NCBI RefSeq assembly: GCF_023055435.1
Contig: NW_025963780.1
Coordinates: 44,888,001-44,952,000, forward strand
Reading direction: 5' to 3'
DNA: 64,000 bases
Source: Haliotis rufescens
Lineage: Eukaryota
The notes under the pieces are model-generated. The model had not been told where the DNA came from. It made no database searches and worked only from the letters and a program-made list of their open reading frames with translations. Below, in pieces: positions 465-62,828 of the stretch (position 1 is the first letter of the stretch; every line of letters begins with the position of its first letter). The position numbers were made by a program, and so were the translations under genes.

Positions 465-522
465 GGCACTCGTGAAGAGCAACCTCCTCGTGGTGAGTGC
501 TGGGTAACGCTAATCGCTCTTC
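465..522 (+). ncRNA. HDV-like self-cleaving ribozyme (P4 essentially absent) at the LINE 5' end
   Basis: P1 GGCACTC 465-471 / GAGTGCT 495-501 with G-U wobble at the first base. P2 GAAGAGC 474-480 / GCTCTTC 516-522. P3 ACC 482-484 / GGT 492-494. L3 TCCTCGT. P1.1 CC/GG at 502-503. J4/2 GCTAA with candidate catalytic C510. Predicted cut 464/465 equals the TSD boundary. Confidence 0.88.
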
Positions 523-593
523 CCCCGTGTGGAACCGGGGCAGAATATTTCCACAGCACCCCATTGCTGGTCGTAAGAGGCGACCAAAGTGGG
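523..593 (+). ncRNA. Unclassified double-pseudoknot RNA module in the LINE 5' UTR, shared with the head of family A
   Basis: CCCCG/CGGGG stem whose loop TGTGGAA pairs with TTCCACA. GCA/TGC stem whose loop CCCA pairs with TGGG at 590-593. Hairpin TGGTCG-TAAGAGG-CGACCA. Compensatory changes relative to family A copies. Confidence 0.7.
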
Positions 594-1102
594 CAGCCCG
601 TTTGCCGTGGGTTGCGTCCCTGTGTCGGCGGAGGACGGGAGTCTGGTGGTTGAGGGCACTGGTTCCAGGAACAGTGTTCCTTTGCCCAATACACCACTTC
701 GACCCTTACTTCGCCTAGACGGGAGGTAGGATGGGCCCGGTCCTATCAATCGGCTGGTCATGCCGAGCCCTGTGCATTCAAAATTGCATTTGCACCAGTT
801 ATGTTTCAGAATTGTATTTTATTTGAGGCTTGGCCCTGATTATTCTGACTGATGTCTCAATTTCAAATGTTTGTATTTCCAATGTATGTATTTCAAGTTT
901 GAAATTTGCCTAGAGTCCTATGCCCAGAAGGCGGTGGTTCATGGGCCAATCTGGTAGAACAATATCTTTTGTTTCTGATTGAGTATATCCTCTTGGTATC
1001 CTTGGTGTCGCCTGTCGGAGGCCCACAGGCAGATGGCATTGTCCTTGTTGACACTCCATGGTGGGTGGGGACCCAAGAGGATGAAACACACTTAATACCA
1101 AC

Positions 1103-2323
1103 ATGGAACCCCCTTTAAAAAAACGCTCTCATGTATCTCATGACTGGTTTGATTCTGAAGATGTTAGTCCAAGGACTTCTCCTGTTACTGTTGACAACTG
1201 GCCTCGATTCTTGGTGATATCTACTTCGGATGGCACCCCGTTAAAGCTGAACCCCTTTGCAATTGAGAAAGCAATACAAGGCATAGCTGGAGATGTGGCA
1301 GATGCCAAAAGATTGCGGTCTGGGTGCTTATTGATAGAATGTAAGAGACAAAAGCAAGCCGTCAATTTGCTCTCACTTCAGTCACTTGTCAGTGTTCCTG
1401 TTGTGGTATCCCCACACAGATCTCTCAATAGTAGCAAGGGAATCGTTCGAGATAGAGGGCGATTCCTGGCAGATATGACTGAAGATGAAATTGTATTGGA
1501 ACTTAAAGGTCAAGGTGTAACGTCGGTGAAGCGCTTTACTGCCAAAAGACAAAATGAAGTTGTTTTAACAAACACTTATCTTTTTACATTTGGATCTCCT
1601 AAAATCCCAGACTCACTTAAAGCAGGCTATTGTAACATCAAGGTGGATAGGTATATCCCTAATCCACTGAGATGTTACAAATGCCAAAAATTTGGTCATG
1701 GTTCTAAGTCATGCACTCATCCATCTGCTTGTCATCGATGTGGTGGCAGTTGTGCCGACAGTGCTGTGTGTGATAATGTGCCATCTTGTGTCAACTGCTC
1801 TGGGGACCACTATTCCTCCTCAAAGGAATGCCCAACTTGGAAATGTGAAGCAAAAATTGTCAAACTGAAACACGAACAGAACATATCGTTTCAAGATGCT
1901 AAGAAACTTGTACTAGCTGAAGCACATCCAACGATGCCTTCTTACTCAGTTACAACCTAGAAAGTTGTTTCAAGGTCTGTTTCCTTTGCATCCATTGGTT
2001 GCCAAACAGATTACACTTGGACAAGAACTGAGTCTCCTCAAGTCATCTCACTTTCTCTGGTTAAAACAACTGCATCTAAAACATCTAGTTCACAGACTAC
2101 TAAATCAATACCTCCTGCTAACAAAAAAAACCCAGACGTTGATTATTCTAAGAATAAGAATAACTCAGATCGTGTCCCAAAAGGTCATAGAGATCCAGTC
2201 TCAATGTTTAATAGGTTTGGTGTGTTTGAGGACATGGACGTGTCCTCTCCACAAAACACACGTTCAAGGAGCCATTCTCCAAAGAAGAAAGACCGAGACC
2301 GGTCTCCTGTCAATGCTCCTTAA
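1103..2323 (+). pseudogene. LINE ORF1 (gag-like nucleic-acid-binding protein with CCHC knuckles), one in-frame stop
   Basis: Motifs PRFLVI, PHRSLNSSKGIV, YIPNPLRCYKCQKFGH, CHRCGG, CVNCSGDH. TAG at 1958-1960, after which the same frame continues (KVVSRS...NRFGVFEDMD...VNAP) to TAA 2321-2323. Confidence 0.9.
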
Positions 2324-5300
2324 ATGTATCATAATACAATCCTACAGTGGAACTGTCGAGGGCTTAGTGCGAATTTTGATGAGGTGAAACTTTTATCAAA
2401 AGAGTTTAATCCAGTGGCTTTTAGTCTTCAAGAAACGTATTTAGGTGACTGCGATAATCTTAGCTTCCGTCAATATGATATGTATCATTCATATGCGAAG
2501 GTTACTAATGGTAAAAGGACAGGTGGTGCGAGCATTCTCGTTCAACAAGGGACAATCCATAGTGCTGTTCCCCTAAATACCAACCTACAGGCGGTTGCAG
2601 TCCGCTTAACTTTGCATATTGCTATAACTTTATGTTCGCTTTATTTACCACCATCATCTGCACTTCAGATTAAAGATTTAGATAATCTGATCACCCAACT
2701 TCCTAAGCCTTTCTTGCTTATGGGCGATCTTAATGGCCACAACCCATTATGGGGTTCCAGTGATCAAAATCATAAAGGGAAAATACTTGAGGAGTTGCTT
2801 CAGAAGCATGATCTCTGTCTATTTAATGATGGTAGCAACACGTATTTACATCCAGCCACTGGTACTTACTCTGCTCTTGATTTAGCCTTTGCTGATCCGT
2901 CTCTTTTTGATGAGTTCTCATGGTCAGTACATGATGACCTGTGTGGGAGTGATCATTTCCCAACCTTACTCAAAACTATCGTTCCTTGTAAAGACCCACC
3001 CATTACTAAATGGAAACTTAACAAGGCAGATTGGCAAACGTTTAGTTCCATGTGCGGTGATGAATTGACCTTCGAAAATTTTACTGATGATCCTGACCCA
3101 ATCAGATCATTTTCGGATAAATTGATCTCCATTGCCACAGAAACCATCCCCAAGACCTCGATTAATCCACTTGTAAAAACACCATGGTATAATGAAGATT
3201 GTAGGAAAGCTAGGAAAAATAGGAAAAAGTCTGAAAGAGTGTTTAATAAACACCCAACAGCCAATAATTTAAACTGCTTAAGAATGTCTAGAGCAAAGGC
3301 TCGTAGAACAATTAAACAAAATAAACGTACAAGCTGGAAAAAGTTTGTTTCGAAAATAAATTCTCGAACCCCCCTTAATAAAGTATGGAATATGATAAGA
3401 AAGATAAAAGGAAAGGGGTCACAGAACAAGTTTCAGCATCTACAATCTAATCATAATGTATTGACATCAAAACAGGATATTGCTAATAAGTTGGCAGAAA
3501 CGTTCAGCCAAAATTCCTCATCTGCCAACTATGACCCAAAATTTCAAAAATTTCAAAATCAGCAGGAAAGGAAAACTCTGAATTTTCGGTCTGATAATGC
3601 AGAGGATTACAATGAATCCTTTTCGTTGACTGAGTTACAAGAGGCTTTGAACAAGGCTCCTGATACATCTTCTGGACCAGATGACGTACATTATCAATTT
3701 TGAAACGTCTTCCTGAGCCTTCTCTTTTAACCCTTTTATCCATATTTAATAGTATATGGGAAAATGGTAACTTCCCTCCTTCCTGGCATGAGGCTACTAT
3801 AATACCTGTGCCTAAACCTGGTAAAGATCACACAGATTCTTCTAATTAGAGACCTATTGCTCTGACAAGTTGTCTCTGTAAAACCATGGAACGGATGATT
3901 AACCGGCGTCTCGTTTGGTTTCTTGAATCAAATAATCTGATCACAGACATTCAGTGTGGTTTTAGACACAACAGGAGCACCATCGATCATCTTGTCCGAT
4001 TGGAATCATTTGTACGGAATGGCTTTGTAAACAAGCAACATGTTGTGTCGATCTTTTTTGATCTTGAGAAGGCTTACGATACCACGTGGAAGTATGGTAT
4101 ATTAAAAGATCTCCACGACATGGGTATACGTGGCCGTATGCCTGATTTCATCACTCGCTTTTTAGAAGATAGAAAATTTAAAGTTAGAGTTGGTTCCACA
4201 TTGTCCGAGATATATGATCAGGAAATGGGGGTCCCTCAGGGCAGTATTTTATCAGTGACACTTTTTAGCATTAAAATCAACAGTCTTGCTAAAGTTTTAA
4301 ATGAAAATATTGATGGTTCGTTGTTTGTTGACGATTTTAATGTTTCATGCTGTGGTGCAAATATGAATAGCATTGAGAGACAGTTACAGCTTTGTCTCAA
4401 TAAAATACAGAAATGGGCCTCAGAAAATGGTTTTAAGTTTTCCAAAACTAAAACCTGCTGTGTTCATTTTTGCAATAAACGGAAACTGCATAAAGATCCT
4501 GAATTGACTTTAAATAATACTCCAATAAAAGTGGTCAAAGAAACCAAGTTTTTGGGTCTTACCTTTGATCAAAAGTTATCATTTATACCCCACATTAAAA
4601 ATCTTAAAGCTAGATGTTTGAAAGCGCTTGACATTTTAAAGGTAGTGTCAAATACTAGATGGGGTGGTGATGGAGAAACACTATTACATCTCTATAGAAC
4701 TTTGATAAGGTCTAAACTTGATTACGGCTGCTTCATTTATGGTTCAGCTCGTAAATCATACATTCAAGTACTTGACACTATTCACCATCAGGGTCTTCGG
4801 TTGTGTCTTGGAGCATTTAGGACATCGCCAATTGAAAGTCTATATGTGGAAGCCAATGAACCCAGTCTTCGCTTAAGACGAATAAAACTGGCATTACAAT
4901 ATATCACTAAACTCCGCTCCCATCCTTCTAATCCAGCATTTAACAATATCTTCAATGCTCCATATCAGCATTTATATCTCAGAAAACCAAACACAATCCC
5001 ACCACTTGGAATTCGCATGCAATCCCATATCAAGGATGCCCATTTAAATCTATCTGCCATTGCCGAATACAAAATCTCAGAAATGCCTCCTTGGCAATCG
5101 ATACAACCTGATGTTAATTTAGAATTAGCGAACCTGAAGAAGTCAGACACTAATCAATTATTTTATCAACAAGAATTTCATGAACTGAAGATCCGATATT
5201 CCTCTTATACCAGTATTTTACACTGATGGTTCAAAAGATGATGAAAAGGTGTCTGCTGCAGCTGTTGCTAACAATTATACTATGTCTATACGTATTACTG

Positions 5301-6010
5301 ACGGAAGTTCGATCTTTACGGCAGAAGCTCAGGCTATATTATTAGCTTTGCAATATATTGAACAGTCTTCTAAAAGAAGTTTTCTCATATTATCTGATAG
5401 TTTGTCCTGTTTACAGGCCATCAAAAATCGAAAAGTGGATCATCCATTTTTAGCTGACATTTTAAGATGTCATCTCAATTTATCCGTAGCTGGAAAAGAT
5501 ATAATTTTTTGTTGGCTGCCCAGTCATGTTGGCATCAGTGGTAACTGTAAAGCAGATTCTTCGGCAAAAGCCGCTCTTAATAAACAAATTTCAAACACAA
5601 ACTTCCCTTATTCTGATCTAAAACCTTCCATCAGACAATATGTGAATGACCATTGGCAAAAAAGTTGGAATACCAAGACTATGAACAAACTTCATGCTAT
5701 CAAACCACAGATTGGAGGTCACGCATATTTTGGTTTACATCGTCATGATGAGGTTGTTTTACAGCGGTGCCGAATTGGCCATAGTTATTATACACATTCG
5801 TTTTTATTGAAGGGTGAAGATCCACCTTTTTGTATACCTTGCCATAGCCCTCTTACTATGAAGCACATTCTGCTGGAATGTGTTGATTTTGCACTTGTCA
5901 GGCAACGTTTTTATGATAATGTTCGTACCTTATCTGAACTTTTTACCACAGTTTCTAATCACTTGATTTTAGCGTATTTAAAGGAAATCAAGCTCTATGA
6001 TAAAATATAG
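2324..6010 (+). pseudogene. LINE ORF2 (AP endonuclease, reverse transcriptase, RNase H, C-terminal zinc finger), disrupted
   Basis: APE: QWNCRGL, LQET, GDLNGH, SDHFP. RT: FFDLEKAYD, GVPQGSILS, FVDD. RNase H: TDGS, LSDSLS, WLPSHVGISGN. ZnF: CIPC...H....C. Lesions: frameshift ~3700, stop at 3847-3849 (SN*RPIAL), frameshift ~5218. Confidence 0.95.
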
Positions 6011-7122
6011 ATTTTTACCTGAACAGTCAGTTTTTTACCTCTGAATGTGATATATGACTGAGATTTTAGTGATTTTCAACATCACTTTTATTCTATTGGT
6101 TGATATCTGATTACGAAAAAGACATTTCTCGCCGCGAATAACTGCAAAATTGCTGATGCGGCGTTAAGCAATATTCACTCACTCACCGCTGTCAGTCATG
6201 CGAATGACTGAGTGCAGAAGTGTCAACCTAAAACCTTGTATAAACAGTGAATACATACCTGCAAACACCTGCATTAATGAAAAGACCTGCAGAATACTTA
6301 CCCACTATTTAATGTGCATTAATGTGAATACATAATATATATACATATAATAATAAGGTGTAAAGGGATAAATGATGATAACACTACACATATATAAATA
6401 TGCTAACAGAATTTATATTAAAAACAAAAAACGCAAAGCCATGGGAGTTGTTACAGTGTTACCATGCACACAGTGACAGTGATTGACAGCTAGGTACAAG
6501 CAACACTGCAATCAACACCATGAAACTTACACGTAATACGCCGGGTGAAAAGCATGCAGCTTCCAGCGGTTGACATGATCAAAACACATGAATAGTGGAT
6601 ACATCAACACCCTTTGATATTACTATGCATTTAACATTACGTGTATGTTTTTTATGGCCGAAAAGTGATAAATGTAAAAACTAAAGAGCATTGGGGTATT
6701 ACTCAAACTTCTCCATACTACGAGTTTTGCTCTATATAAGGACATCACGTGACCCATTCATCAGTCCTTTTCCATTGTCGTGTGACATATTTACTTTTGT
6801 CACAAATATCACAAATAGGCTTTATCCTGTTCACAGCGCCATTGTTGTGAAAGCCTAGTGATATGGAAAAGGTGCTTATCTTACAGCGTAAGCGTGATGA
6901 TGGGGAGATCGAGATCGTTAGCTTCGGTTCATTTCGTCCGTTGTCTTTGCTGTCCAGTCTCAATCTGTCAATTGTTACCTGTCAGATTTGGCGGGTAAGT
7001 TGATCACGTGTCTCGATCACACCCGGAAACATACGAGTAACATCGGGTGGCCAATCCGATGTAACCCAATGTACGAGTGTGGAAGCACCAATCACTACAA
7101 TTATATTAGTATTGGTATAATG

Positions 7123-8975: not shown

Positions 8976-9078
8976 TATATTTAGTTTCTTTCATTTCAAG
9001 TTTAGTCATCATTTTGTCACATAATTAGGAGAATACTAGTAACAATTAGTTCCTCTCAGATCTTCCAGAGTTTATTTG

Positions 9079-9330
9079 ACCCGTGAAGATCCGGGGTAGA
9101 ATTGGTCTTCAGCAACCCATGCTTGCCCTAAAAGGCGACTAACGGGATCGGGTGGTCAGGCTCGCTGACTTGGTTGATGCATGTCATCAATCCAAATTGC
9201 GTGGATCGATGCTCATGATCTTAATCACTGGACTGTCTGGTCCAGACTCGATTATTTACAGACCGCCGTCATATAGCTGGAATATTGCTGAGTGCGGCGT
9301 TAAACAACAAACCAACCAACAACCAACCGT
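9079..9330 (+). mobile_element. Short non-autonomous retroelement, family A (pseudoknot head, LINE tail)
   Basis: Starts ACCCGTGAAGATCCGGGGTAGAA, ends GCGGCGTTAAA(CAAC)n; TSD AGTTTATTT at 9069 and 9331. Confidence 0.9.
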
Positions 9331-9377
9331 AGTTTATTTAATAGGTTATCACGTTAAGTTCCTTGTTATTAAAACTG

Positions 9378-9661
9378 AGGGGCACGGGTGGCCAAGTCGT
9401 CTAAGGCGCCGCAATTCGCTGTGCAGAGTTGCGTCCCTTGGGCACGCCAGAAACCTATGATTGTGGGTTCGAATCCCGGTTCGCCACGATTATGTTTCTA
9501 GGTTTGTCAGCACCATACCCGTGCTCGTGGGTTTCACCGAAGTGTTAAACGTCTGAGACCTGCATCACTTCGGGCTTTCCTCCCACATTAAGCTGACACG
9601 CCGTGATATAACTGGAATACTGTTAAAAGCGGCGTTAAACCCAACTCACTCACTCACTCAC
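9378..9661 (+). mobile_element. SINE family B
   Basis: Near-identical to 7820-8107; TSD TATTAAAACTG at 9367-9377 and 9662-9672. Confidence 0.92.
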
Positions 9662-20693: not shown

Positions 20694-21035
20694 GGACCGC
20701 CTCCGTGGTCTAGTGGTAGAGCGTCCGCCCGGAGAGCGGAAGGTCCGGGGTTCGATCCCCGGCCGCGTCATACCAAAAGACGTTAAAAGATTGTACGTGT
20801 TGTTACCCTGTCTGGTAAAACAAGGACTGGTCGGCTCGGAGTCAGTATACTGTGTCTGAGTGGGGTATTCATGTTAAACTGCGGCATGGTATCTCAGTGA
20901 GCTAGCACTATAAATCGGCATCAGTCCGGACTAGTACAAGCAGCCACACAAACACACACACGCACATGCACGTCGCTATATAAGTGCAATAATCTTGGAC
21001 GCGACGTTAAACCCCATTTCACCTCACCTCACCTC
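20694..21035 (+). mobile_element. tRNA-headed SINE family D with V-domain-like core
   Basis: A box TGGTCTAGTGG, B box GGTTCGATCCC, core GTCATACCAAAAGACGTTAAAA..GTAC, tail CGACGTTAAA...(CACCT)n; TSD ACTGG(T/G)GTCAAGTA at 20680 and 21036. V-domain assignment is from recalled consensus. Confidence 0.88.
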
Positions 21036-28691: not shown

Positions 28692-28951
28692 ACCCGTGTG
28701 GATCTGTGTCAGAATGCTTGCTGTAGGAGGAGACTATGCTTGCTGTAAGAGAGGACTATGCTTACCGTAAGAGGCAACTAACGGGATCGGGTGGTCGGGA
28801 TCGGGTGGTCAGGCTCGCAGACTAGGTTCAACCGTATCCCAGTTGCGTGGATCGTTGCTCCTTATGTCAATCACAGAATTGTGTGCTCAAGATGCGATAT
28901 TTACAGTCCGCCGTCATGGGATATTGCTGCGTGAGGCGTTACAAAACAAAC
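28692..28951 (+). mobile_element. Family A element with triplicated hairpin unit
   Basis: ACCCGTGTGGA head; three TGCTTG..GTAAGAGG..ACTA-like units; TSD ATTACA(G/A)TACAG at 28680 and 28952. Confidence 0.82.
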
Positions 28952-34942: not shown

Positions 34943-36287
34943 AGTGAGTGGATCGGAGGAGTTGATGAGTTGATGAGTAATCTGTGGATAAGTAGATCAG
35001 TGGATGAGTGATCAGAGGATGAGTGGATGAGAGGATAAGGTCGATGAGAGGATCAGAGGATGAGTGGATCAGTGGATGAGTGGATCAGAGGATAAGAGGA
35101 TCAGAGGATGAGTGGACCAGAGGATGAGTGGATCAGAGGATGAGGTGGATAAGTGGATCAGAGGATGAGGAGGATGAGAGGATGAGTGGATCAGAGGATC
35201 AGAGGATCAGAGGATGAGTAGACCAGAGGACGAGTTGATCAGAGGATGAGAGGATGAGGTGGATCAGAGGATGAGTGGATCGGTGGATGAGACGGATCAG
35301 GGGATGAGTGGATCAGAGGATGAGTGGATCAGAGGATGGGAGGATGAGGTGGATCAGAGTATGAGAGGATGAGAAGATGAGGTGGATCAGAGGACGATGT
35401 GGATGAGAGGATCAGAGGATGAGTGGATCAGGGGATGAGATGGATCAGAGGATGAGAGGATCAGAGGATAAGTGGATCAGAGGATGAGAGGATGAGGTTG
35501 ATCAGAGGATGGGAGGATTAGTAGACCAGAGGACGAGCGGATGAGAGGATAAGGTGGATCGGTGGATGAGATGATCAGAGGATGAGAGGATGAGGTTGAT
35601 CAGAGGATGAGTTGATGAGTGTTGATTGATCTGAGGATAAGTGGATCAGTGGATGAGTGATGAGAGGATAAGGTGGATGAGTGGATCAGAGGATCAGTGG
35701 ATGAGTGGATCAGAGGATCAGTGGATGAGTGGATCAGAGGATCAGTGGACCAGAGGATCAGTGGATGAGAGGATGAGAGGGTGAAAGGATGAGTTGGATC
35801 AGAGGAAGAGTGGACCAGAGGATGAGAGGATCAGAGGATGAGGTGGATCAGAGGATGAGAGGATGGGTGGACCAGAGGATGAGTGGACCAGAGGATGAGA
35901 GTATCAGAGGTTGAGCGGACCAAGGATGAGTGGATCAGAGCATGAGAGGATGAGTTGGATCAGAGGATGAGGTGGATCAGAGGATGAGAGGATGGGTGGA
36001 TCAGAGGATAAGTGGATCAGTGGATGAGTGATCAGAGGATGAGGTTGATCAGAGGATGAGTGAATCAGAGGATGAGAGGATCAGAGGATGAGTGGATCAG
36101 AGGAGCAGAGGATCAGAAGATGAATGGATCAGAGCATCAGAGGATGATCGGTTTAGAGGATGAGTGGATGAGAGGATGAGTGGATCAGAGAATGGGTGGA
36201 TCAGAGGATAAGAGGATGGGGTGGATCAGAGGATGAGATGGATCAGAGGATGAGTTGATGAGTGGATGAGTGATCTGAGTGGATGAT
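34943..36287. repeat. Purine-rich degenerate short-unit array (GAGGATGA / GTGGATCA)
   Basis: Visible 7-8-bp subunits; its last ~520 bp recur at 42519-43038. Confidence 0.93.
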
Positions 36288-36352
36288 CCCGTTTGTCGCC
36301 TCTTACGACAAGCATTAGTCTCTGAAGGCCAAATCCAACCGAAACTTCACGT
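36286..36352 (-). mobile_element. Family A head fragment (duplicated at +6751)
   Basis: Reverse complement reads CGTGAAG..TCGGTTGGATTTGGCCTTCAG...ATGCTTGTCGTAAGAGGCGACAAACGGGAT. Confidence 0.75.
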
Positions 36353-37599
36353 CACCTTATAATTAATATGAATCACATGCTAATAAATAATTAACGATAT
36401 GTTGGTCTTTGATAGTTTCAGACTACATAAGGACTTTTCAGATGTCCACCACATGATGTTTATATTGTTTCTAGTAAACACAAAACTGTTTAAAAAGAAT
36501 TCGAAAATTATAATATGAATATGAATAAGGTTGAATATAAAATTCCCTTTTTACATGTTTGTTCTCAATAGACAATAAAGAAATGTTATACCCAAACATC
36601 CTTGTATCAACCAAAATACGTTCACTTTCTAATAATGTAACTGAAACGCTTTAAAGCTGCATGATTTTATTTGATTTAAACATACACTATGTTAAAGTGT
36701 TCAATGTGTTATTTATGTGTTATAAAAGATAAGTTGTAATTCAAACACTCAAAGCATTGGAAATGTACGCTATGCCTGTGGCATTCTGGGTAGTGAAACA
36801 AAAGATTGAATGTTAATATCTAACCTGTGCTAATAATCTGCACATGCGTGACCTTTCGGTCCACCCCACATCCCCTTACTGATTGCACTTTCCATATAAA
36901 AAATGACACGAAGGAGTGTTGTTATTAACTGTAAAAAACTCAGTCTGCATTTGATGTCTTTTATGAGAACATTTTAATATGCCACCATATATTCCAGAAT
37001 GTAAAGAAAGAAAGAAGTTTGGGATGGTTGTGAAACAACAACATGTTTTATTAAAGTCCGAGTGCATGTTTCGTGATTGTTTTATTGTCAATGTGACGGC
37101 ACCACACGCAACTCCAGTCTTATTTTCGGTGGGAAGGCGCATAAAAGAAAACAGTCGCAATTTATTGTACATAAAACAGTATTAAACATAACATATTTGA
37201 AATATCATTCAAGAAAGAATGGCTCCTTGAAAACAAAGCGCCTCGTGTGTGTCGTTTGATAGGCAATTTAATGTCCATGTTTACATCCATTGTAATGCAT
37301 GGCATGGTTCTTCAAAGGATAGGAGAGAAACGAATATAGTTTGTGGGGGCGGAACAGGGTGTACTCAGGATTGTTATGAAAGTTTCGTTAGGGAGTCTGA
37401 AAATTATATTCGCATACAGTTAAACCTCGTAAGTTTTGACCCCGTTTATCCGGAAACCCGCTTTCCGGACGGCAGCCGTTCAGAGGCATTTACTAACTAT
37501 GACACGATGCATTTCAACATGGCGATGCTATCTCATACCGCGGCCTTCACAGAGAGTCTTCACACCTCCCTACCCACTGGCACCTACTTGCATGGGTCG

Positions 37600-42518: not shown

Positions 42519-45500
42519 AGAGGATGAGAGGGTGAAAGGATGAGTTGGATCAGAGGAAGAGTGGACCAGAGGATGAGAGGATCAGAGGATGAGGTGGATC
42601 AGAGGATGAGAGGATGGGTGGACCAGAGGATGAGTGGACCAGAGGATGAGAGTATCAGAGGTTGAGCGGACCAAGGATGAGTGGATCAGAGCATGAGAGG
42701 ATGAGTTGGATCAGAGGATGAGGTGGATCAGAGGATGAGAGGATGGGTGGATCAGAGGATAAGTGGATCAGTGGATGAGTGATCAGAGGATGAGGTTGAT
42801 CAGAGGATGAGTGAATCAGAGGATGAGAGGATCAGAGGATGAGTGGATCAGAGGAGCAGAGGATCAGAAGATGAATGGATCAGAGCATCAGAGGATGATC
42901 GGTTTAGAGGATGAGTGGATGAGAGGATGAGTGGATCAGAGAATGGGTGGATCAGAGGATAAGAGGATGGGGTGGATCAGAGGATGAGATGGATCAGAGG
43001 ATGAGTTGATGAGTGGATGAGTGATCTGAGTGGATGATCCCGTTTGTCGCCTCTTACGACAAGCATTAGTCTCTGAAGGCCAAATCCAACCGAAACTTCA
43101 CGTCACCTTATAATTAATATGAATCACATGCTAATAAATAATTAACGATATGTTGGTCTTTGATAGTTTCAGACTACATAAGGACTTTTCAGATGTCCAC
43201 CACATGATGTTTATATTGTTTCTAGTAAACACAAAACTGTTTAAAAAGAATTCGAAAATTATAATATGAATATGAATAAGGTTGAATATAAAATTCCCTT
43301 TTTACATGTTTGTTCTCAATAGACAATAAAGAAATGTTATACCCAAACATCCTTGTATCAACCAAAATACGTTCACTTTCTAATAATGTAACTGAAACGC
43401 TTTAAAGCTGCATGATTTTATTTGATTTAAACATACACTATGTTAAAGTGTTCAATGTGTTATTTATGTGTTATAAAAGATAAGTTGTAATTCAAACACT
43501 CAAAGCATTGGAAATGTACGCTATGCCTGTGGCATTCTGGGTAGTGAAACAAAAGATTGAATGTTAATATCTAACCTGTGCTAATAATCTGCACATGCGT
43601 GACCTTTCGGTCCACCCCACATCCCCTTACTGATTGCACTTTCCATATAAAAAATGACACGAAGGAGTGTTGTTATTAACTGTAAAAAACTCAGTCTGCA
43701 TTTGATGTCTTTTATGAGAACATTTTAATATGCCACCATATATTCCAGAATGTAAAGAAAGAAAGAAGTTTGGGATGGTTGTGAAACAACAACATGTTTT
43801 ATTAAAGTCCGAGTGCATGTTTCGTGATTGTTTTATTGTCAATGTGACGGCACCACACGCAACTCCAGTCTTATTTTCGGTGGGAAGGCGCATAAAAGAA
43901 AACAGTCGCAATTTATTGTACATAAAACAGTATTAAACATAACATATTTGAAATATCATTCAAGAAAGAATGGCTCCTTGAAAACAAAGCGCCTCGTGTG
44001 TGTCGTTTGATAGGCAATTTAATGTCCATGTTTACATCCATTGTAATGCATGGCATGGTTCTTCAAAGGATAGGAGAGAAACGAATATAGTTTGTGGGGG
44101 CGGAACAGGGTGTACTCAGGATTGTTATGAAAGTTTCGTTAGGGAGTCTGAAAATTATATTCGCATACAGTTAAACCTCGTAAGTTTTGACCCCGTTTAT
44201 CCGGAAACCCGCTTTCCGGACGGCAGCCGTTCAGAGGCATTTACTAACTATGACACGATGCATTTCAACATGGCGATGCTATCTCATACCGCGGCCTTCA
44301 CAGAGAGTCTTCACACCTCCCTACCCACTGGCACCTACTTGCATGGGTCGGGAGGTCTTGCATGGGTCGGGAGGTCTTGCATGGTGACTTGGTTGGTAGC
44401 CTGGCGTCGTACCCCAACAACGTTGGCCTTTGCTTATTATACTGATCACCGGAGTGTCTGGTCCTGACTCCATTGTTTACAGATCGCCGTATGGCAGGAA
44501 TATTAATGGGTGCCGTGGAAGGAACAAACACTTATTATTGATGAAAATTGTGTGGCCTGTGCCCCCGGTAGAGCAGAACATGCCTGACCTTCTCGCGAAC
44601 ACCTGGTGTTATCACTGATTCATTCCATCACGTAGCTGGAATATCGCTGAGTGCCGCGTTAGACAACAAATAAACAATTCAACATGACCATATAATCATA
44701 TATAAGTTCATGACTATTTTTTTTATTTTACGACCATCGGTGTCAGATAAATGAGGCTGACTATTTTTAGTGTCGTTGACGTTTTGAATTTAGGAATGGC
44801 TGCGTATTGACAAAGTACAACACTCAGTAACGATAACTCGTTAATACGGACATTTATACTCGCAATGGTGCCGTCCGGATTAACGAATGAGTAAGTATTA
44901 TTTTACGCCGCTTTTATCAATATTCCAGGAATTCACGTCGGGGGACACCAGAAATGGGCTTCACACATTGTACCCATGTGTGGAATCGAACCAGGGACTT
45001 AGCCGTGACGCTTTAACCACTAGGCTTCACGCATAAACTAACATGCATACATAAAACGATTCCATGAGTAAGTACTGCACGTTTTATGACATGGTCAAAG
45101 TAGGTAGAAGGTTCCACACTGTGGAGCTGGTATCTTGATAAGTACGTCGTTAGACGGAAGGTCACGATCAATTGGTAATGGCCCATTACAGGTTTCCTGT
45201 AACGAAGTAATTAGTTTACGGGTCACCTTGATCATATAACGGGAATCAGAACAATGATGATTAACGTTGCTAGACATTAGGGTAGGGTGATAATGACTTG
45301 GTCTTTGCAGATGCCTAACACTGTCCGGACTTGAGCGCGGACTCGGCCAGTCTATCATCTGGAACGAGATGTTGATATCTAAATATGTTATTGTCAACCT
45401 TTCTGCACAGCCAACACAATCCATCACCTTTAAGTTAATGACATCGACATCGGATGTTTGTCATGTATTTATTGATTAAAAATCAGTGATACAGTGAGTG

Positions 45501-49272: not shown

Positions 49273-49860
49273 CCTATTAACCTGCTGATCGCGGGCTGAA
49301 CGTTATCACATAAAGCAGGCCTCGTGTCTCGTTAACTATTGTGCTATTTTCGGTAGCAGGCTATTCGACTCACGGAGTCAAGATGTCGCATCCTGGCCTT
49401 ATGTTATTAACCAGCCATGTCCTGTCTGATTCGACTGCTGAGCATCTCATACATTCTGTGTGGAATATGTCAAGGCCAAAGTCGTCTATGGCGCACGGAG
49501 CACGCCAAAGGGCCGTTCAAGATGAATAAATGTACGTTAACTCATTATATAATCAAGTTTTGTTTGTCCCGGACAGACTGACGAAGGAATCGACAAATTA
49601 CATTATTTTGATCTTCTGGAGACGCTAGCTCCCAAAGTACGGTCTCATTATGTGGCTTAAGCTATTGGCGTGAAATGAGTGTATAGTTTTAAAAGGGTAA
49701 TTACAGTACAAATTGAAAGAACGTGGTGAGTTGGCCTCGTTACAACGCTTTCCTTTGGTACAGTACTGGCACTAGTTGTGACCACACATATCTGCCAAGG
49801 TTTGCGTTACAAACCCCTGTGGTCAAGCGTGCCGTTTTACAAATAATAGCGCAAATACTT

Positions 49861-52012
49861 GAAACACTTGCTTGATAACGGTGTTGGAACCTACACGGAA
49901 ACACTTGCTTGATAACGGTGTTAGAATCTACACCGAAACACTTGCTTGATAACGGTGTTGGAATCTACACGGAAACACTTGCTTGATAACGATGTTAGAA
50001 TCTACACGGAAACACTTGCTTGATAACGGTGTCGGAACCTACACGGAAACACTTGCTTGATAACGGTGTTAGAACCTACACGGAAACACTTGCTTGATAA
50101 CGGTGTTAGAATCTACACCGAAACACTTGCTTGATAACGGTGTCGGAACCTACACGGAAACACTTGCTTGATAACGGTGTGAGAATCTACACGGAAACAC
50201 TTGCTTGATAACGGTGTCGGAACCTACACGTAAACACTTGCTTGATAACGGTGTTGGAACCTACACCGAAACACTTGCTTGATAACGGTGTTGGAACCTA
50301 CACGGAAACACTTGCTTGATAACGGTGTTAGAATCTACACGGAAACACTTGCTTGATAACGGTGTTAGAACCTACACCGAAACACTTGCTTGATAACGGT
50401 GTTAGAATTTACACCGAAACACTTGCTTGATAACGGTGTAAGAATCTACACCGAAACACTTGCTTGATAACGGTGTTAGAATTTACACCGAAACACTTGC
50501 TTGATAACGGTGTTAGAATCTACACCGAAACACTTGCTTGATAACGGTGTCGGAACCTACACGGAAACACTTGCTTGATAACGGTGTTGGAACCTACACG
50601 GAAACACTTGCTTGATAACAGTTTTAGAATCTACACGGAAACACTTGCTTGATAACGGTGTTAGAATCTACACCGAAACACTTGCTTGATAACGGTGTCG
50701 GAACCTACACGGAAACACTTGCTTGATAACGGTGTTAGAATCTACACCGAAACACTTGCTTGATAACGGTGTTGGAACCTACACGGAAACACTTGCTTGA
50801 TAACGGTGTTAGAATCTACACGGAAACACTTGCTTGATAACGGTGTTAGAATCTACACGGAAACACTTGCTTGATAACGATGTTAGAATCTACACGGAAA
50901 CACTTGCTTGATAACGGTGTCGGAACCTACACGGAAACACTTGCTTGATAACGGTGTTAGAACCTACACCGAAACACTTGCTTGATAACGGTGTTAGAAC
51001 CTACACGGAAACACTTGCTTGATAACGGTGTTAGAATCTACACCGAAACACTTGCTTGATAACGGTGTCGGAACCTACACGGAAACACTTGCTTGATAAC
51101 GGTGTGAGAATCTACACGGAAACACTTGCTTGATAACGGTGTCGGAACCTACACGTAAACACTTGCTTGATAACGGTGTTGGAACCTACACCGAAACACT
51201 TGCTTGATAACGGTGTTGGAACCTACACCGAAACACTTGCTTGATAACGGTGTTAGAATCTACACGGAAACACTTGCTTGATAACGGTGTCGGAACCTAC
51301 ACGGAAACACTTGCTTGATAACGGTGTTAGAACCTACACCGAAACACTTGCTTGATAACGGTGTTAGAATTTACACCGAAACACTTGCTTGATAACGGTG
51401 TCGGAACCTACACGTAAACACTTGCTTGATAACGGTGTTAGAATCTACACCGAAACACTTGCTTGATAACGGTGTCGGAACCTACACGGAAACACTTGCT
51501 TGATAACGGTGTTGGAACCTACACGGAAACACTTGCTTGATAACAGTTTTAGAATCTACACGGAAACACTTGCTTGATAACGGTGTTAGAATCTACACCG
51601 AAACACTTGCTTGATAACGGTGTCGGAACCTACACGGAAACACTTGCTTGATAACGGTGTTAGAATCTACACCGAAACACTTGCTTGATAACGGTGTCGG
51701 AACCTACACGGAAACACTTGCTTGATAACGGTGTTGGAACCTACACGGAAACACTTGCTTGATAACAGTTTTAGAATCTACACCGAAACACTTGCTTGAT
51801 AACGGTGTTAGAATCTACACCGAAACACTTGCTTGATAACGGTGTTAGAACCTACACGGAAACACTTGCTTGATAACGGTGTTAGAATCTACACCGAAAC
51901 ACTTGCTTGATAACGGTGTTAGAATCTACACGGAAACACTTGCTTGATAACGGTGTTAGAATCTACACGGAAACACTTGCTTGATAACGGTGTTAGAATC
52001 TACACCGAAACA
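49861..52012. repeat. 37-bp satellite, ~58 copies, with 925-bp higher-order periodicity
   Basis: Unit GAAACACTTGCTTGATAACGGTGT(T/C)(A/G)GAA(T/C)CTACAC(C/G); no spacers. Confidence 0.97.
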
Positions 52013-54130: not shown

Positions 54131-55952
54131 CACATCCTACATGGAAAGTGCCTTCCTTACATCCTCTCCACCAGTGTTTACACTGATCACAAACTGCTCA
54201 CGGTATACCAATCAGACCTACAGGCCTGACTCCGGCCCTGGGTAGGAAGAAATCACAACAAAAAACATAATTATTATGATTAACATATTTTATTCGAGTA
54301 TTGTATTGGAGAAAAGGTTATTCCTGATGTAAGGCCACAGGTGTATATGCATGTATATATGAGGTTGGAGTAGGAACAAATGCTATTTACAAGCCCCAAT
54401 AGCTACTTATACAGCTGCGTAGCTCACCCTTCGGCAAGCATGTCAGAAATACAGTAACGAACTCCTCTTAGACGGCGTAATACTAAATCCAAAATACAAA
54501 TTAACTTTAATGCAATACACACTGGAAGCAAAGATGGCCGTTACAAAATAACAAATATTTTGACATTAATTGATGTTAATCTATGAATGTATGTTACGCT
54601 TCTAAATGTCATATTTAAAATTGTCCAGAGTTGTAAATTGATGATTTACAACCTTTGAGAATGCAGCAAAGGTTTATGTTTCTTCCAATGACTTCTTTCC
54701 TCAAATGAAATACATATATCCAGGGAATTATTTGTTTGTTAAATACCCCAGATTACTTAGCATTGTCGAGAATATCCCGGGGAATTTAAAGATTTAAGCA
54801 AAAGAAGCTTAAACAACTTGAGTTTAAATTTCTTGATCATGCTATTAAATAATATAGTCAGCAAAATTCTTTTAGGGGCTGAGTTGCAAAAGTTAAAGGC
54901 TGTAAGCGACTGTAACATGTTATATCCTTGCAGACACCAAGCACTTCTACATTACACGTCGAGTATGTGTAGTCATGAAACTGGAATGTAATACAAAGGG
55001 TCTTGCCATACCTCCAGGTCAAAATGACGAGATCTGATTGGTCCACGTGATTTTGATTAAATACGTTATCATACCTCCATGTCAGAATGATGAGATCTCA
55101 TTGAACCACGTGATCTTGATTAAATACAAAGTATCCATCCTTGGTGGGAAAAACATTTCTCAGGGGGAAAATAAATCACTCATATCCCGCCACGAGCAAG
55201 TCAAGCTGCACGTGGATTCGGAGAGGCATAATACATCCCTTTTGCCCGTCTTCGAAGCAAAAAGCAAGTCAATGAAAGTCACGTCACACAGCACAAGCTA
55301 ACCTCCGCTCAGCTCGAGCAGCTGTTTCCTATTAATTTTGAATTTGTTTTAATTATTTTACAATGTCATACTAAAACATGCCGGTAAGATACATTCGTTG
55401 TCGCAGGATCACGCGGTGCTTTATACGTCCCTCGCCTCAGCCTCGCCTGGTGCAAAACCTAACGTGGGACGCATAAATCCCATCTACCTCTCGTGTTCCT
55501 GCTTTAAGTTAAAGTATGGCATATGCTTCGTTCTATGTGTTCTTATTGAGACTGGAATGCATGTATGGGACTTTGAAGCAACAGAGAACATGCTGAAAAG
55601 CATTACAATACACATAAATGTATACACAAAACCCACATCACGCATGTTACCAATATATTATGAAGACTAAAACTAGAGGGACCGTTCGGCAAATGAAAGT
55701 ATACACAATGCATGCCTTAACATGTGTGAATATAACAGACATAAATGTAGCTATGTTTTAATTACTATAAAGGTTAGTGAATTGAAGACACAGGTAATGA
55801 ACTTAACATTACGTCTGCATGATCACAAGTACTGAGTCTTATGTTCGGTGAAACATGTCACACACATATTGATAATATCTTAATAGAACAATTTCGTTTC
55901 ACCCATGCTTTGAACTTGCCCTGGCTGTTAGTTATTTGTTTGGAAACTACAT

Positions 55953-58680
55953 GTTGCATGTTAAAGATCAGCCTTGACACTATGCATATTAATGATCAGC
56001 CTTGACACTATGCACGATAGTGATCAGCCTTGACACTATGAATGTTTATGATCAGCCTTGACACTTAGCCTGTTGATGATCAGCTTTGACACTATGCATG
56101 TTAATGATCAGCTTTGACACTATGAATGTTGATGATCAGCTTTGACACTATGCATGTTAATGATCAGCCTTGACACTATGCATGTTAATGATCAGCTTTG
56201 ACACTATGCACGTTAATGATCAGCCTTGACACTATGCATATTAATGATCAGCCTCGACACTATGCACGTTAATGATCAGCCTTGACACTATGCATATTAA
56301 TGATCAGCCAGGACACTATGGATGTTAATGATCAGGCAGGATGCTATGCACGTTAATAATCAGCTTTGACACTATGCACGTTAATGATCAGCCTTGACAC
56401 TATGCATATTAATGATCAGCCTCGACACTATGCACGTTAATGATCAGCCTTGACACTATGCATATTAATGATCAGCCAGGACACTATGAATGTTAATGAT
56501 CAGGCAGGATGCTATGCACGTTAATGATCAGCTTTGACACTATGCGTCTTAATGACCAGCCTTGACACTATGCATGTTAATGATCAGCCTGAAAGATTTG
56601 CATGTTAATGATCATCCTTGACACTATATAGTTAATGATCAGCCTTGACACTATGCACGTTAATGATCAGCCTTGACATTATGCGTCTTAATGACCAGCC
56701 TTGACACTATGCATGTAAAAGATCAGCCTGAAAGATTTGCATGTTAATGATCAGCCTTGACACTATGCATGTAAATGATCAGCCTTGACACTATGCATGT
56801 TAATGATCAGCCTTGACACTATGCGTCTTAATGACCAGCCTTGACACTATGCATGTTAATGATAAGCCTTGACACTATGCATTTTAATGATCAGCCTTGA
56901 CACTTTATGTGTTAATGACCAGCCTTGACACTTTGTTAGTTAATGACCAGCCTTGACACTTTTTGTGTAAATGATCAGCCTTGACACTTTGCCTGTTAAT
57001 GATCAGCCTTGACACTATGCATGTTAATGATCAGCCTTGACACTATGCATTTTAATGACCAGCCTTGACACTTTGTGTGTTAATGACCAGCCTTGACACT
57101 TTGTGTGTTAAAGATCAGCCTTGACACTTTGTGTGTTAATGATCAGCCTTGACACTTTGCCTGTTAATCTCCAGACTTGACACTATGCATGTTAATGATC
57201 AGCCGGGATGCTATGCATGTTAATGATCAGGCTTCACACTATGCATGATAATGATCAGCCTGAAAGCTTTGCTTGTTAATGATCAGCCTTGACACTATGC
57301 ATGTTAATGATCAGCCTTGACACTATGCGTCTTAATGACCAGCCTTGACACTATGCATGTTAATGATCAGCCTGAAAGATTTGCATGTTAATGATCAGCA
57401 TTGACACTATGCATGTAAATGTTCAGCCTTGACACTATGTATGTTAATGATCAGCCAGGATGCAATGTATTTTAATGATCAGCCTTGACACTATGCATGT
57501 TAATGATCAGCCGGGATGCTATGCATGTAAATGATCAGCCTTGACACTATGCATGTTAATGATCAGCCAGGATGCAATGCATGTTAATGATCAGCCTTGA
57601 CACGTTTTGTGTTAATGATCAGTCTTGATACTATGCATGTTAATGATCAGCCTTGACACGTTTTTTGTCAATGATCAGTCTTGATACTATGCATGTTAAT
57701 GATCAGCCAGGACACAATGCATGTTAATGATCAGCCTTGATACTATGCATCTTAATGATCAGCCTTGACACTTTGAGTGTTAATGATCAGTCTTGATACT
57801 ATGCATGTTAGTGATCAGCCAGGACACAATGCATGTTAATGATCAGCCTTGATATTATGCATCTTAATGATCAGCCTTGACACGTTTTGTGTTAATGATC
57901 AGTCTTGATACTATGCATGTTAATGATCAGCCTTGACACTATGCATGTTAATGATCAGCCTTGACACTTTGTGTGCTAATGATCAGCCTTGACTTTTTGT
58001 GTGTTAATGATCAGCCTTGACACTATGCATGTTAATGATCAGCCTTGACACTATGCATGTTAATGATCAGCCTTGACACTATGCATGTTAATGATCAGCC
58101 TGAAAGCTTTGCATGTTAATGATCAGCCTTGACACTTTTTAAGTTAATGATCAGCCTGAAAGCTTTGCATGTAAAGATCAGCCTTGACACTATACATGTT
58201 AATGATCAGCCTTGACACTATGCATGTTAATGTCCAGCCTTGGTACTATGCATGTTAATGTCCAGCCTTGACACTATGCATGTTAATAATCAGCCTTGAC
58301 ACTATGCATGTTAATGATCAGCCTTGACACTATGCATGTTAATGATCAGCCTTGACACTATGCATGTTAATGATCAGCCTGAAAGCTTTGCATGTTAATG
58401 ATCAGCCTTGACACTTTTTAAGTTAATGATCAGCCTGAAAGCTTTGCATGTAAAGATCAGCCTTGACACTATACATGTTAATGATCAGCCTTGACACTAT
58501 GCATGTTAATGTCCAGCCTTGGTACTATGCATGTTAATGTCCAGCCTTGACACTATGCATGTTAATAATCAGCCTTGACACTATGCATGTTAATGATCAG
58601 CCAATACACTATGCTGGTTAATGATCAGCCAGGACGCTATGCATGCTAATGATCAGCCAGGATACTTTGCATGTTAATCA
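55953..58680. repeat. 28-bp satellite, ~97 copies, moderately diverged
   Basis: Unit ATGCATGTTAATGATCAGCCTTGACACT. Confidence 0.97.
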
Positions 58681-59639: not shown

Positions 59640-62600
59640 CTCCCTTCTCCCCCCACCCACTCCTCCCTCCCACTCGCCCCTCCACCTCCCTCCTCACCCC
59701 TCCCACTCATCCCTTCCACTCATCCCCCCCACTCGCCCCTCCCAGTCCCTTCTCACCCCTTCCACTCACCCCTCCCACTCGTCCCTCACACTCCATTCTC
59801 ACCCCTCCTACTCGCCCCTCATCCCCCCACTCACCTCTCCCGCTCACTCCTTCCACTCACCCTCCCCCTCGCCCCTCCCACTCCCTTCTCAGCCTCCCAC
59901 TCACCCCTCCCAGTCACCCCTCCCACTCACCCCTCTCACTCACCCCTCCCACTCACCCCTCCCACTCCCTTCTCCCCCCTTCCACTCACCCCTCCCACTC
60001 ACCCCTCCCACTCACCTCTCCCACTCGCCCATCCAACTCACCCCCTCACTCACCCCTCTCACTCACCCCTCTCACTCACCCCTCCCACTCACCCCTCTCA
60101 CTCACCCCTCTCGCTCACCCCTCTCACTCACCCCTCTCGCTCACCCCTCCCAGTCACCCCTCTCACTCACTACTCCCACTCACCCCTCTCGCTCACCCCT
60201 CTCACTCACCCCTCCCACTCACCCCTCTCACTCATCCCTCCCAGTCACCCCTCTCACTCGCCCCTCCCAGTCACCCCTCTCACTCACTACTCCCACTCAC
60301 CCCTCTCGCTCATCCCTCCCAGTCACCCCTCTCACTCGCCCCTCCCACTAACCTCTCCCAGTCACTCCTCTCACTCACCCCTCCCACTCACCCTTCTCAC
60401 TCACCCCTCTCACTCACCCCTCCCACTCGCCCATCCAACTCACCCCTCCCACTCACCCCTCTCGCTCACCCGTCTCAGTCAACCCTCCCACTCGCCCCTC
60501 CCAGTCACCCCTACCACCCACCCCTCTCACTCACCCCTCTCACTCACCCCTCCCAGTCACCCCTCTCACTCACCCCTCCCAGTCACCCCTCTCACTCACC
60601 TCTCCCACTCACCCCTTCCACTCACCCCTCCCACTCGCCCCTCCTACTCCTTTCTCACCCTCCCACTCACCCCTCCCACTCAGCCCTTCCACTCCCTTCT
60701 CACCCCTCCCACTCACCTCTCCCACTCACCTCTCCCACTCGCCCCTCCCACTCCCTTCTCACCCCTTCCACTCACCCCTCCCACTCCCTTCTCACCCCTC
60801 CCACTCGCACCTCCCGCTACCTTCTCACACCTCCCACTCACCCCTCCCACTCACCCCTCCCACTCCCTTCTCACCCCTCCCACTCGCACCTCCCGCTACC
60901 TTCTCACACCTCCCACTCACCTCTCCCACTCGCCCCTCCCACTCCCTTCTCACCCCTTCCACTCACCCCTCCCACTCGCCCCTCCTACTCCTTTCTCACC
61001 CTCCCACTCACCCCTCCCACTCAGCCCTTCCACTCCCTTCTCACCCCTCCCACTCACCTCTCCCACTCACCTCTCCCACTCGCCCCTCCCACTCCCTTCT
61101 CACCCCTTCCACTCACCCCTCCCACTCCCTTCTCACCCCTCCCACTCGCACCTCCCGCTACCTTCTCACACCTTCCACTCACCCCTCCCACTCCCTTCTC
61201 ACCCCTCCCACTCGCACCTCCCGCTACCTTCTCACACCTCCCACTCACCCCTCCCACTCACCCCTCCCACTCCCTTCTCACCCCTCCCACTCGCACCTCC
61301 CGCTACCTTCTCACACCTCCCACTCACCCCTCCCACTCACCCCTCCCACTCCCTTCTCACCCCTCCCACTCGCACCTCCCGCTACCTTCTCACACCTCCC
61401 ACTCACCCCTCCCACTCACCCCTCCCACTCCCTTCTCACCCCTCCCACTCACCCCTCCCACTCCCTTCTCACCCCTCCCACTCGCACCTCCCGCTACCTT
61501 CTCACACCTTCCACTCACCCCTCCCACTCCCTTCTCACCCCTCCCACTCGCACCTCCCGCTACCTTCTCACACCTCCCACTCACCCCTCCCACTCACCCC
61601 TCCCACTCCCTTCTCACCCCTCCCACTCGCACCTCCCGCTACCTTCTCACACCTCCCACTCACCCCTCCCACTCACCCCTCCCACTCCCTTCTCACCCCT
61701 CCCACTCGCACCTCCCGCTACCTTCTCACACCTCCCACTCACCCCTCCCACTCACCCCTCCCACTCCCTTCTCACCCCTCCCACTCACCCCTCCCACTCC
61801 CTTCTCACCCCTCCCACTCGCCCCTCCCACTCCCTTCTCACACCTCCCACTCGCCCCTCCCACTCCCTTCTCACACCTCCCACTCACCCCTCCCACTCAC
61901 CCCTCCCACTCCCTTCTCACCCCTCCCACTCACACCTCCCACTCACCCCTCCCACTCCCTTCTCACACCTCCCACTCGCACCTCCCACTCACCCCTCCCA
62001 CTCCCTTCTCACCCCTCCCACTCACACCTCCCACTCACCCCTCCCACTCCCTTCTCACACCTCCCACTCACCCCTCCCACTCACCCCTCCCACTCCCTTC
62101 TCACCCCTCCCACTCACCCCTCCCACTCACCCCTCCCACTCCCTTCTCACACCTCCCACTCGCACCTCCCGCTACCTTCTCACACCTCCCACTCACCCCT
62201 CCCACTCACCCCTCCCACTCCCTTCTCACCCCTCCCACTCACCCCTCCCACTCCCTTCTCACCCCTCCCACTCGCCCCTCCCACTCCCTTCTCACACCTC
62301 CCACTCGCCCCTCCCACTCCCTTCTCACACCTCCCACTCACCCCTCCCACTCACCCCTTCCACTCCCTTCTCACCCCTCCCACTCACACCTCCCACTCAC
62401 ACCTCCCACTCACCCCTCCCACTCACCCCTTCCACTCCCTTCTCACCTCTCCCACTCGCCCCTCCCACTCCCTTCTCACCCCTTCCACTCACCCCTCCCA
62501 CTCCCTTCTCACCCCTTCCACTCACCCCTCCCACTCCCTTCTCACCCCTCCCACTCACCCCTTCCACTCCCTTCTCACCTCTCCCACTCGCCCCTCCCAC

Positions 62601-62828
62601 TCCCTTCTCACACCTCCCACTCACCCCTCCCACTCCCTTCTCACCCCTTCCACTCGCACCTCCCGCTACCTTCTCACCCCTCCCACTCACCCCTCCCACT
62701 CCCTTCTCACCCCTCCCACTCGCACCTCCCGCTACCTTCTCACACCTCCCACTCACCCCTCCCACACGCCCCTCGCACTCCTTTCTCCCCCCTTCCACTC
62801 ACCCCTCCCACTCACCCCTCCCACTCCC
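59640..62828. repeat. C/T-rich complex satellite (CCCCTCCCACTCA / CCCTTCTCA); G-rich on the minus strand
   Basis: Visible 13/22-bp subunits; 336-bp block recurrence (ORFs at 61054 and 61390). Confidence 0.96.

Follow-up and report, generated by a model that had tools for sequence, protein, structure and literature searches.

A covarying, pseudoknotted RNA fold in the 5′ leader of an abalone LINE and its relatives, shared with the head of a tRNA-less SINE family

Introduction

The 5′ UTRs of LINEs usually evolve fast, and the heads of SINEs nearly always derive from small cellular RNAs. One locus in the 1.33-Gb abalone (Haliotis) genome raises the question of whether a LINE leader can instead hold a conserved RNA structure, and what a SINE might gain by carrying part of it. 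There, within the 5′ UTR of a LINE copy, a compact module (522-593) lies directly 3′ of an HDV-like ribozyme (465-521), and heads of the same type stand at the start of short elements elsewhere in the window, by which we mean the whole stretch of 64,000 nucleotides that was analysed. The original prediction described the module as a functional double pseudoknot of an unclassified kind, ending at 593, and suggested for it a new self-cleaving ribozyme, a block to 5′ exonucleases, an IRES-like element or a signal for loading ORF2p. Here, the fold is examined in independent relatives of the LINE, its boundaries and its position relative to 5′ ends are determined, and the possible functions are weighed.

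Materials and Methods

Relatives were gathered through an alignment of ORF1 homologues (A1) and then from 80 ORF1-bearing metagenome contigs with 38-60% ORF1 identity. ORF1 alone was used as bait, and the module sequence played no part in the choice. The module was sought upstream of ORF1 by nhmmer and then by a covariance model of the non-coding leader motif. Pairing was evaluated on a plain MAFFT alignment of 11 sequences (A2) and on a model-aligned set of 17 sequences (A4), each against controls with slid partner strands; the row of one relative (L092) includes N letters, which were kept unchanged. Since model-aligned rows favour nested helices, the MAFFT result, the unmodelled helix PK2 and a partner-swap test are reported separately. 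PK2 and S1 were left out of the covariance model, and the alignment is thus unfitted to both. The partner-swap test, which depends only lightly on alignment, compared each strand's own partner with the partner strands of other sequences in 11-13 non-redundant lineages, with 20000 permutations.

Results

The LINE and its 5′-terminal ribozyme

The module belongs to a single, young LINE copy (Table 1), both ends of which adjoin a 12-bp target-site duplication; the 3′ tail is (CACT)n, followed by the duplication copy after 6187. Pfam recognizes pieces of the endonuclease, reverse transcriptase and RNase H domains, spread over several broken frames. The Gag-like ORF1 has three CCHC-like knuckles that form invariant columns in the homologue alignment, is 69-72% identical to proteins of Haliotis rufescens and H. 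rubra, and also has relatives in Gigantopelta and Saccostrea by protein search. The LINE is here provisionally called I/Nimb-like.

The element starts with a minimal HDV-like ribozyme, which Rfam reports below threshold (RF02682, 28.5 bits, E 0.0019; also RF00094) and which a custom helix descriptor also picks out. Genome copies of the LINE begin at the position equivalent to 465. The Rfam HDV models align to the ribozyme at 463-544 and not to 523-593 as a unit.

Table 1. Positions of the LINE, the leader RNA elements and the family A SINEs in the window.
Feature	Position	Strand	Remarks
LINE copy	465-6187		
LINE ORF1	1103-1960		Gag-like
Minimal HDV-like ribozyme	465-521	+	LINE 5′ end; helices P1, P2 and P3
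Ribozyme P1	465-471/495-501	+	
Ribozyme P2	474-480/515-521	+	
Ribozyme P3	482-484/492-494	+	
S1	523-527/536-540	+	C-run with G-run; encloses 528-534, the 5′ strand of S2
S2	528-534/549-555	+	Crosses the 3′ strand of S1 and the A-rich linker 541-548
AGAAT linker	542-546	+	Conserved
S3 hairpin	556-558/565-567	+	Extendable to 554-558/565-569
S3 loop	559-564	+	5′ strand of PK2
Hairpin H	570-573/581-584	+	4-bp stem; nearly invariant 7-nt loop 574-580
PK2 3′ strand	589-593	+	Pairs with S3 loop 560-564; second pseudoknot
H2 hairpin	594-600/608-614	+	Stacks directly on PK2; 7-nt loop 601-607 conserved
Leader continuation	615-640	+	Conserved in alignment; helix 618-620/637-639
Family A SINE copy	9079-9325	+	~70-nt module-type head, body, 3′ stem-loop tail and (AACC)n; 9-bp target-site duplication
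Other family A heads	14212, 15362 (partial), 19846, 28693, 53851	+	
Other family A heads	36295, 43046	-	

A fold under selection in diverged LINEs

All of the helices, the linker and the hairpin that had been predicted were found in their places. The strands follow the order S1a-S2a-S1b-S2b and then S3a, loop, S3b, hairpin and PK2b, so that the arrangement of S1 and S2 plausibly represents an H-type pseudoknot topology. The motif of hairpin H has 5 matches in the window against 0.02 expected. The minimum-free-energy fold of the single sequence (z -1.19) has no unusual stability, a value that is uninformative because pseudoknots lie outside the folding model. LINE copies within the genome likewise say little about structure, as they are 92-100% alike and decaying neutrally.

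The metagenome relatives are far more diverged, and in about 15 of the 80 contigs the module lies upstream of ORF1 and on its strand. In the MAFFT alignment A2, 90.9% of the cells in the proposed helices are paired, compared with 35-47% when the partners are slid, and 17 of 31 pairs have changed on both sides. In the model-aligned A4 the figure is 90.5% against 35-45% in the slid controls, while 23 of the 31 pairs still pair through two-sided changes, and none of 500 shuffles reached the observed covariation. The individual helices contribute unequally. S2 has two-sided changes in 7/7 pairs (90.9% paired) and S3 covaries in 3/3 pairs (95.8% paired); hairpin H is 100% paired, with compensatory changes in three of its four pairs. 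H2 covaries in 4/7 pairs and is 99.2% paired, a proportion of 97.5% being found on 45 sequences. In the partner-swap test, the permutations that did as well as the observed partners, out of 20000, numbered 0 for S2, 0 for S3, 22 for PK2 and 1 for H2. Moreover, RNAalifold recovers unaided the long-range helix PK2 as well as S2, H and H2, and adds a CCC/GGG helix. The fold is therefore under selection and common to many diverged LINEs, and the covarying stems together with conserved unpaired motifs bear out the functional fold that had been proposed. G-U pairs are frequent in S2, S3 and H2, which indicates sense-strand RNA.

The two pseudoknots fare differently. PK2, to which the alignment was not fitted, covaries in 4 of its 5 pairs on A4, and its variants in the relatives include CCCC/GGGG, CCTCC/GGAGG, CTCC/GGAG and CCTTC/GAAGG; the second pseudoknot, between the S3 loop and the downstream run, is thus demonstrated. 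For the first, S2 is strongly covarying while S1 is uninformative: S1 is complementary in all relatives (76.7% of cells paired on A4) and invariant, so that real covariation is absent, and in the swap test 3014 of 20000 permutations were as good, which is not significant. As S1 never varies, the first pseudoknot is unproven by covariation, although plausible, and of the predicted double pseudoknot it is the PK2 half that covariation supports. A tRNA-like cloverleaf, formed by the 5′ C-run and a downstream G-run, was also considered and was rejected for the LINEs because covariation assigns the G-run to the S3 loop.

The domain extends beyond the predicted end

The end at 593 could not be maintained. 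The conserved domain runs on through the covarying H2 and the helix of the leader continuation, for which RNAalifold pairs 114-116 with 134-136, to about 640. The conserved domain spans 522-640 and belongs to the sense-strand RNA of the 5′ leader in an I/Nimb-like LINE lineage. H2 is the most widely kept piece of the leader, being detected by nhmmer in about 40 of the 80 ORF1-anchored loci, and it has no counterpart in the SINE heads described below.

The leader from 594 to 700, its most widely kept part, comprises H2, whose loop is invariant, together with a CCC/GGG helix and a GGATCCTGG...TTGAG block. This 594-700 block is kept in ~40/80 of the ORF1-anchored relatives, even where the upstream module is missing.

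Position of the module relative to ribozymes and 5′ ends

The proposal of a new self-cleaving ribozyme would place a cut at the module's own 5′ edge. It might be suggested by the pseudoknotted architecture and by the family A SINEs, whose 5′ end is invariant at the module edge, and ribozymes are common at LINE 5′ ends (PMC5786205, PMC8501958). However, an exact 25-mer across the junction of ribozyme and module has 849 occurrences in the genome, whereas a genome search for LINE-type module starts lacking the ribozyme gave 3 matches, all of them ribozyme-bearing variants, which leaves 0 true cases. Self-cleavage or a transcription start at 522 would leave LINE copies beginning there, so that the ratio of 849:0 argues against both, and the module is not a 5′-end-forming site in this LINE. 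The strand order of the module also differs from the nested HDV order P1-P2-P3-P3′-P1′-P4-P2′. Apart from the HDV-like ribozyme at 465-521, no described ribozyme was matched, in agreement with the original prediction: models of twister, twister-sister, pistol, hatchet and hammerhead found nothing up to E = 10 in 380-780 or 9050-9340, none of them reached the gathering score anywhere in the window, and Rfam gave no family match for the module, the SINE or the leaders of the relatives. Self-cleavage at the module edge is accordingly highly improbable.

The relatives show that ribozyme and module need not adjoin. One relative (L117) has an HDV-like ribozyme at 26-81, which passes the strict helix descriptor and closely resembles the minimal ribozyme of abalone, and its module is at 233; in this lineage the ribozyme thus lies ~150-170 nt upstream of the module. 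A second relative (L138, ribozyme about 180-235) probably has the same arrangement. In a module-less family (L097), a weak full-length alignment of the drz-agam-1 type is found at 700-786, before H2. Ribozymes and module therefore occur in varied combinations on one conserved leader core. Given the distant ribozyme in L117 and the terminal module in the SINE, the module works both inside a leader and at a terminus.

The idea that the module is 5′-terminal in all relatives was set aside. It is insecure: contigs do often begin there, but the relatives L070 and L068 have an 11-mer in common in their flanks, and upstream of the module in L117 and L138 the sequence continues as far as a ribozyme.

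A tRNA-less SINE family headed by the module

The family A heads that had been predicted at 9079, 14212, 19846 and 53851 exist, and they carry an alternative S2 whose strands are again complementary. The covariance model matches these heads, at 9077, 14210, 19844 and 53849. Family A copies start at the module edge, and in about two dozen of them target-site duplications adjoin the head, mostly 0-2 nt upstream of the C-run. Their similarity to the LINE stops after the PK2 strand; the SINE keeps S1 through PK2 and does not have H2. Tails are of the (AACC)n type and resemble the LINE tail. Rfam found no tRNA or other small-RNA similarity, including 5S and 7SL, in a family A copy, and ARAGORN found no tRNA in the window. 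Family A is a tRNA-less SINE that borrows a LINE head plus a LINE-like 3′ stem-loop tail. It numbers roughly 1e4 copies, an estimate drawn from 209 matches whose flanks contain a 5-mer by chance.

Two other accounts of family A were rejected. Family A is not the reverse complement of a SINE tail, because the 3′ microsatellite, the target-site duplications and the tail in common with a tRNA-SINE at 9383-9660 fix the + orientation; RNA polymerase III A and B boxes were dropped, as small-RNA homology is absent.

The terminal head invites the explanation that the domain is an internal RNA polymerase II promoter, whose DNA would set the first base, the RNA fold being secondary or a second function. 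About 1e4 SINE copies need a source of transcription, and the domain is terminal in elements that have target-site duplications and no similarity to tRNA, 5S or 7SL. Among 100 family A 5′ junctions sampled by chance, 66 read GA before the C-run, and of those that keep the first A about 80% have a G in front of it (tallied by eye); this enriched G could be a templated base or could derive from a cap. A promoter has also been proposed in print (PMC4758252), and the dual system of Pr77 offers a precedent (PMC3383444). On the other hand, DNA binding sites cannot account for the compensatory changes, G-U pairs included, that four helices show; the upstream ribozyme is kept in 849 LINE copies and no LINE copy starts at the module; and the module of L117, about 150 nt behind its ribozyme, does not set the start site there. 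A promoter cannot be the whole story of the domain, and as its principal explanation we consider it unlikely, though to be taken seriously.

The SINEs bear equally on the suggestion of an IRES-like or initiation-factor-recruiting element that would translate ORF1 from uncapped, ribozyme-processed RNA. The module does lie between ribozyme and ORF1, the RNA must be uncapped after cleavage, and H2 with the downstream leader is kept in LINEs only. Yet ORF1 begins ~500 nt downstream of the module, and non-coding SINEs keep the first 70 nt and have been amplified to ~1e4 copies with them, which weakens the suggestion. Since a non-coding SINE keeps S1 to PK2, the function should be one that a parasite RNA needs, and a pure translation element is very unlikely.

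Further observations on SINEs and on the window

Several other features of the SINEs were recorded. The family A tail forms a stem-loop, CGCCG...CGGCG, similar to that of the LINE. A tRNA-derived SINE at 9383-9660, with A and B boxes, has a 3′ region and a (CACT)n tail like those of family A and the LINE, and presumably uses the LINE partner group of family A. A 22-nt unit containing hairpin H is tandemly repeated in many SINE copies (for example, 28693-28800 in the window and L054:2210-2400), the number of units ranging from 2 to >5, and single-unit and two-unit subfamilies are both present. Rare LINE-type leaders combine a SINE-type S2 strand with H2, and one ribozyme-bearing copy has a SINE-like S2 5′ strand (G000:C35:36340935-36340993, G000:C157:10193624-10193682 and G000:C101:8612427-8612457); these mixed leaders are possible relatives of the LINE that donated the family A head.

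Elsewhere in the window, 36239-36439 and 42990-43190 (both on the - strand) are identical and 6751 bp apart, and pairs of inverted-repeat arms are offset equally, which together indicate a recent tandem duplication of ~6.75 kb. There are three long satellite arrays, at 49750-51900 (37-bp units), 55840-58000 (28-bp units) and 59650-63000 (13/20-bp units). An Rfam tRNA match at 20699-20770 (31.2 bits, threshold 29) may represent a degenerate tRNA gene or the head of a SINE; ARAGORN calls no tRNA in the window.

Discussion

Relation to described elements

The domain proved unclassified in one sense and described in another. The RNA-family databases have no entry for it, as stated above, a full-text literature search for the motif strings returned no paper, and viral contigs scanned by pattern and by ORF1 gave no match. 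Nevertheless, Matetovici et al. 2016 (PMC4758252) had already reported a LINE-derived domain of ~70 bp that heads the LP-SINEs of Haliotis, Littorina, oysters and scallops, and matched it to the opening 68 bp of three LINEs, Nimb-17_LMi of locust, I-3_DR of zebrafish and RTE-9_CPB of turtle. That head shares with the present one its length and its place at the 5′ terminus of tRNA-less SINEs with target-site duplications and 3′ microsatellites, as well as a homology to the 5′ UTR of I/Nimb-like LINEs that is confined to this domain; the correspondence lies at the level of description. This account, together with the ORF1-anchored metagenome relatives, bears out the original prediction in that a similar motif exists in other invertebrates. 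The LP-SINE head was read as a LINE promoter, experiments were called for, and RNA structure is absent from the account (PMC4758252); the topic was not taken up in the later literature searched. The fold, the covariation, the H2 core and the upstream ribozyme are additions of the present analysis to that account. The ~70-nt sequence domain fits one already described, as LP-SINE head and Nimb LINE 5′ domain, and its RNA fold corresponds to no known RNA family.

Pr77/L1TcRz, the ~77-nt 5′ hallmark of L1Tc and NARTc for which DNA- and RNA-level roles have been proposed (PMC3383444), is similarly common to a LINE and its non-autonomous partner and kept across otherwise different elements. Pr77 is itself an HDV-like ribozyme, however, whereas here the ribozyme is a separate unit, the topology of the module differs and there is no sign of cleavage.

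The 5′ region of R2 reportedly combines an HDV-like ribozyme with a conserved 5′ pseudoknot bound by the R2 protein (work of the Eickbush and Turner/Kierzek laboratories). The abalone LINE has the same order, with a ribozyme at the RNA 5′ end and conserved pseudoknotted RNA behind it. In contrast, similarity of sequence or model to R2 is absent, R2 is a single-ORF and site-specific element, and a protein partner of the module is putative.

An exonuclease block or a 5′-end-defining RNA

A 5′ hydroxyl end is not a substrate of Xrn1, and the 849:0 ratio would therefore also fit a fold of the xrRNA kind, one that stalls exonucleases, stabilises the template and, in module-first elements, trims read-through transcripts to the module edge. 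The xrRNAs of flaviviruses and plant viruses are likewise compact folds of ~70 nt in which a loop pairs downstream and a further hairpin follows. The double pseudoknot, the G-C-only first stem and the A-rich crossing strand would be in keeping with such a block, which would be transferable between LINE clades and phyla, since the exonuclease that it stalls is universal among hosts. Stable 5′ folds have moreover been shown to raise the performance of R2 templates (PMC11331408). Against this, the module resembles no Rfam family and is a candidate by its architecture, a likeness of fold; it is not obvious how a classical H-type pseudoknot would ring the 5′ end, and in L117 and L138 the module lies well inside the leader. 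We regard an exonuclease block as quite unlikely.

A broader form of the idea is that the module is a new class of 5′-end-defining RNA, either an exonuclease-stalling knot or a context-dependent ribozyme. This too is unlikely in our estimation. If it were true, LINEs and SINEs without a promoter would remake their 5′ ends exactly, by an RNA evolutionarily interchangeable with HDV-like ribozymes on a shared leader core.

A possible platform for recognition

The module is in our view best read as an RNA-level cis element, probably a protein-recognition platform borrowed by SINEs, and we give this reading as a whole about even odds. Taken by itself, the claim that it acts as RNA and as a scaffold for recognition is a tentative one, held at somewhat less than even confidence. 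The stems would hold out the invariant unpaired AGAAU linker and UAAGAGG loop as a recognition surface, and invariant unpaired motifs on covarying stems are what would be expected of one. Such a surface might be recognized by the Gag-like ORF1 protein with its three CCHC knuckles, by ORF2p or by a host factor. A reported RTE element, of a clade without ORF1, has the domain, which speaks against the ORF1 protein as the partner in all cases and favours ORF2p or a host factor. Recognition may single out the transcript for assembly into a ribonucleoprotein and for retrotransposition, and it is for the sake of that recognition that SINEs would copy the module; as they do so without H2, the role of H2 should be dispensable in trans. 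Alongside the platform, the domain may also serve module-first elements as a DNA-level promoter. It could count against the platform that SINEs need a promoter, and the junction G, read as a cap signature, could favour a start at the module edge.

Significance

A leader fold of ~120 nt with two pseudoknots, of which the second is demonstrated and the first plausible, persists across LINE families with only 38-60% identity in ORF1, and a SINE family of roughly 1e4 copies has adopted its first 70 nt as a head. Leader modules have evidently been shuffled in these elements, with the ribozyme adjoining the module, standing at a distance from it or occurring without it, and with the module as the first bases of SINEs. 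The domain adds a candidate family for RNA databases. Moreover, the covariation gives the LP-SINE puzzle, that is, how tRNA-less SINEs are made and recognized, an RNA model with testable base pairs.
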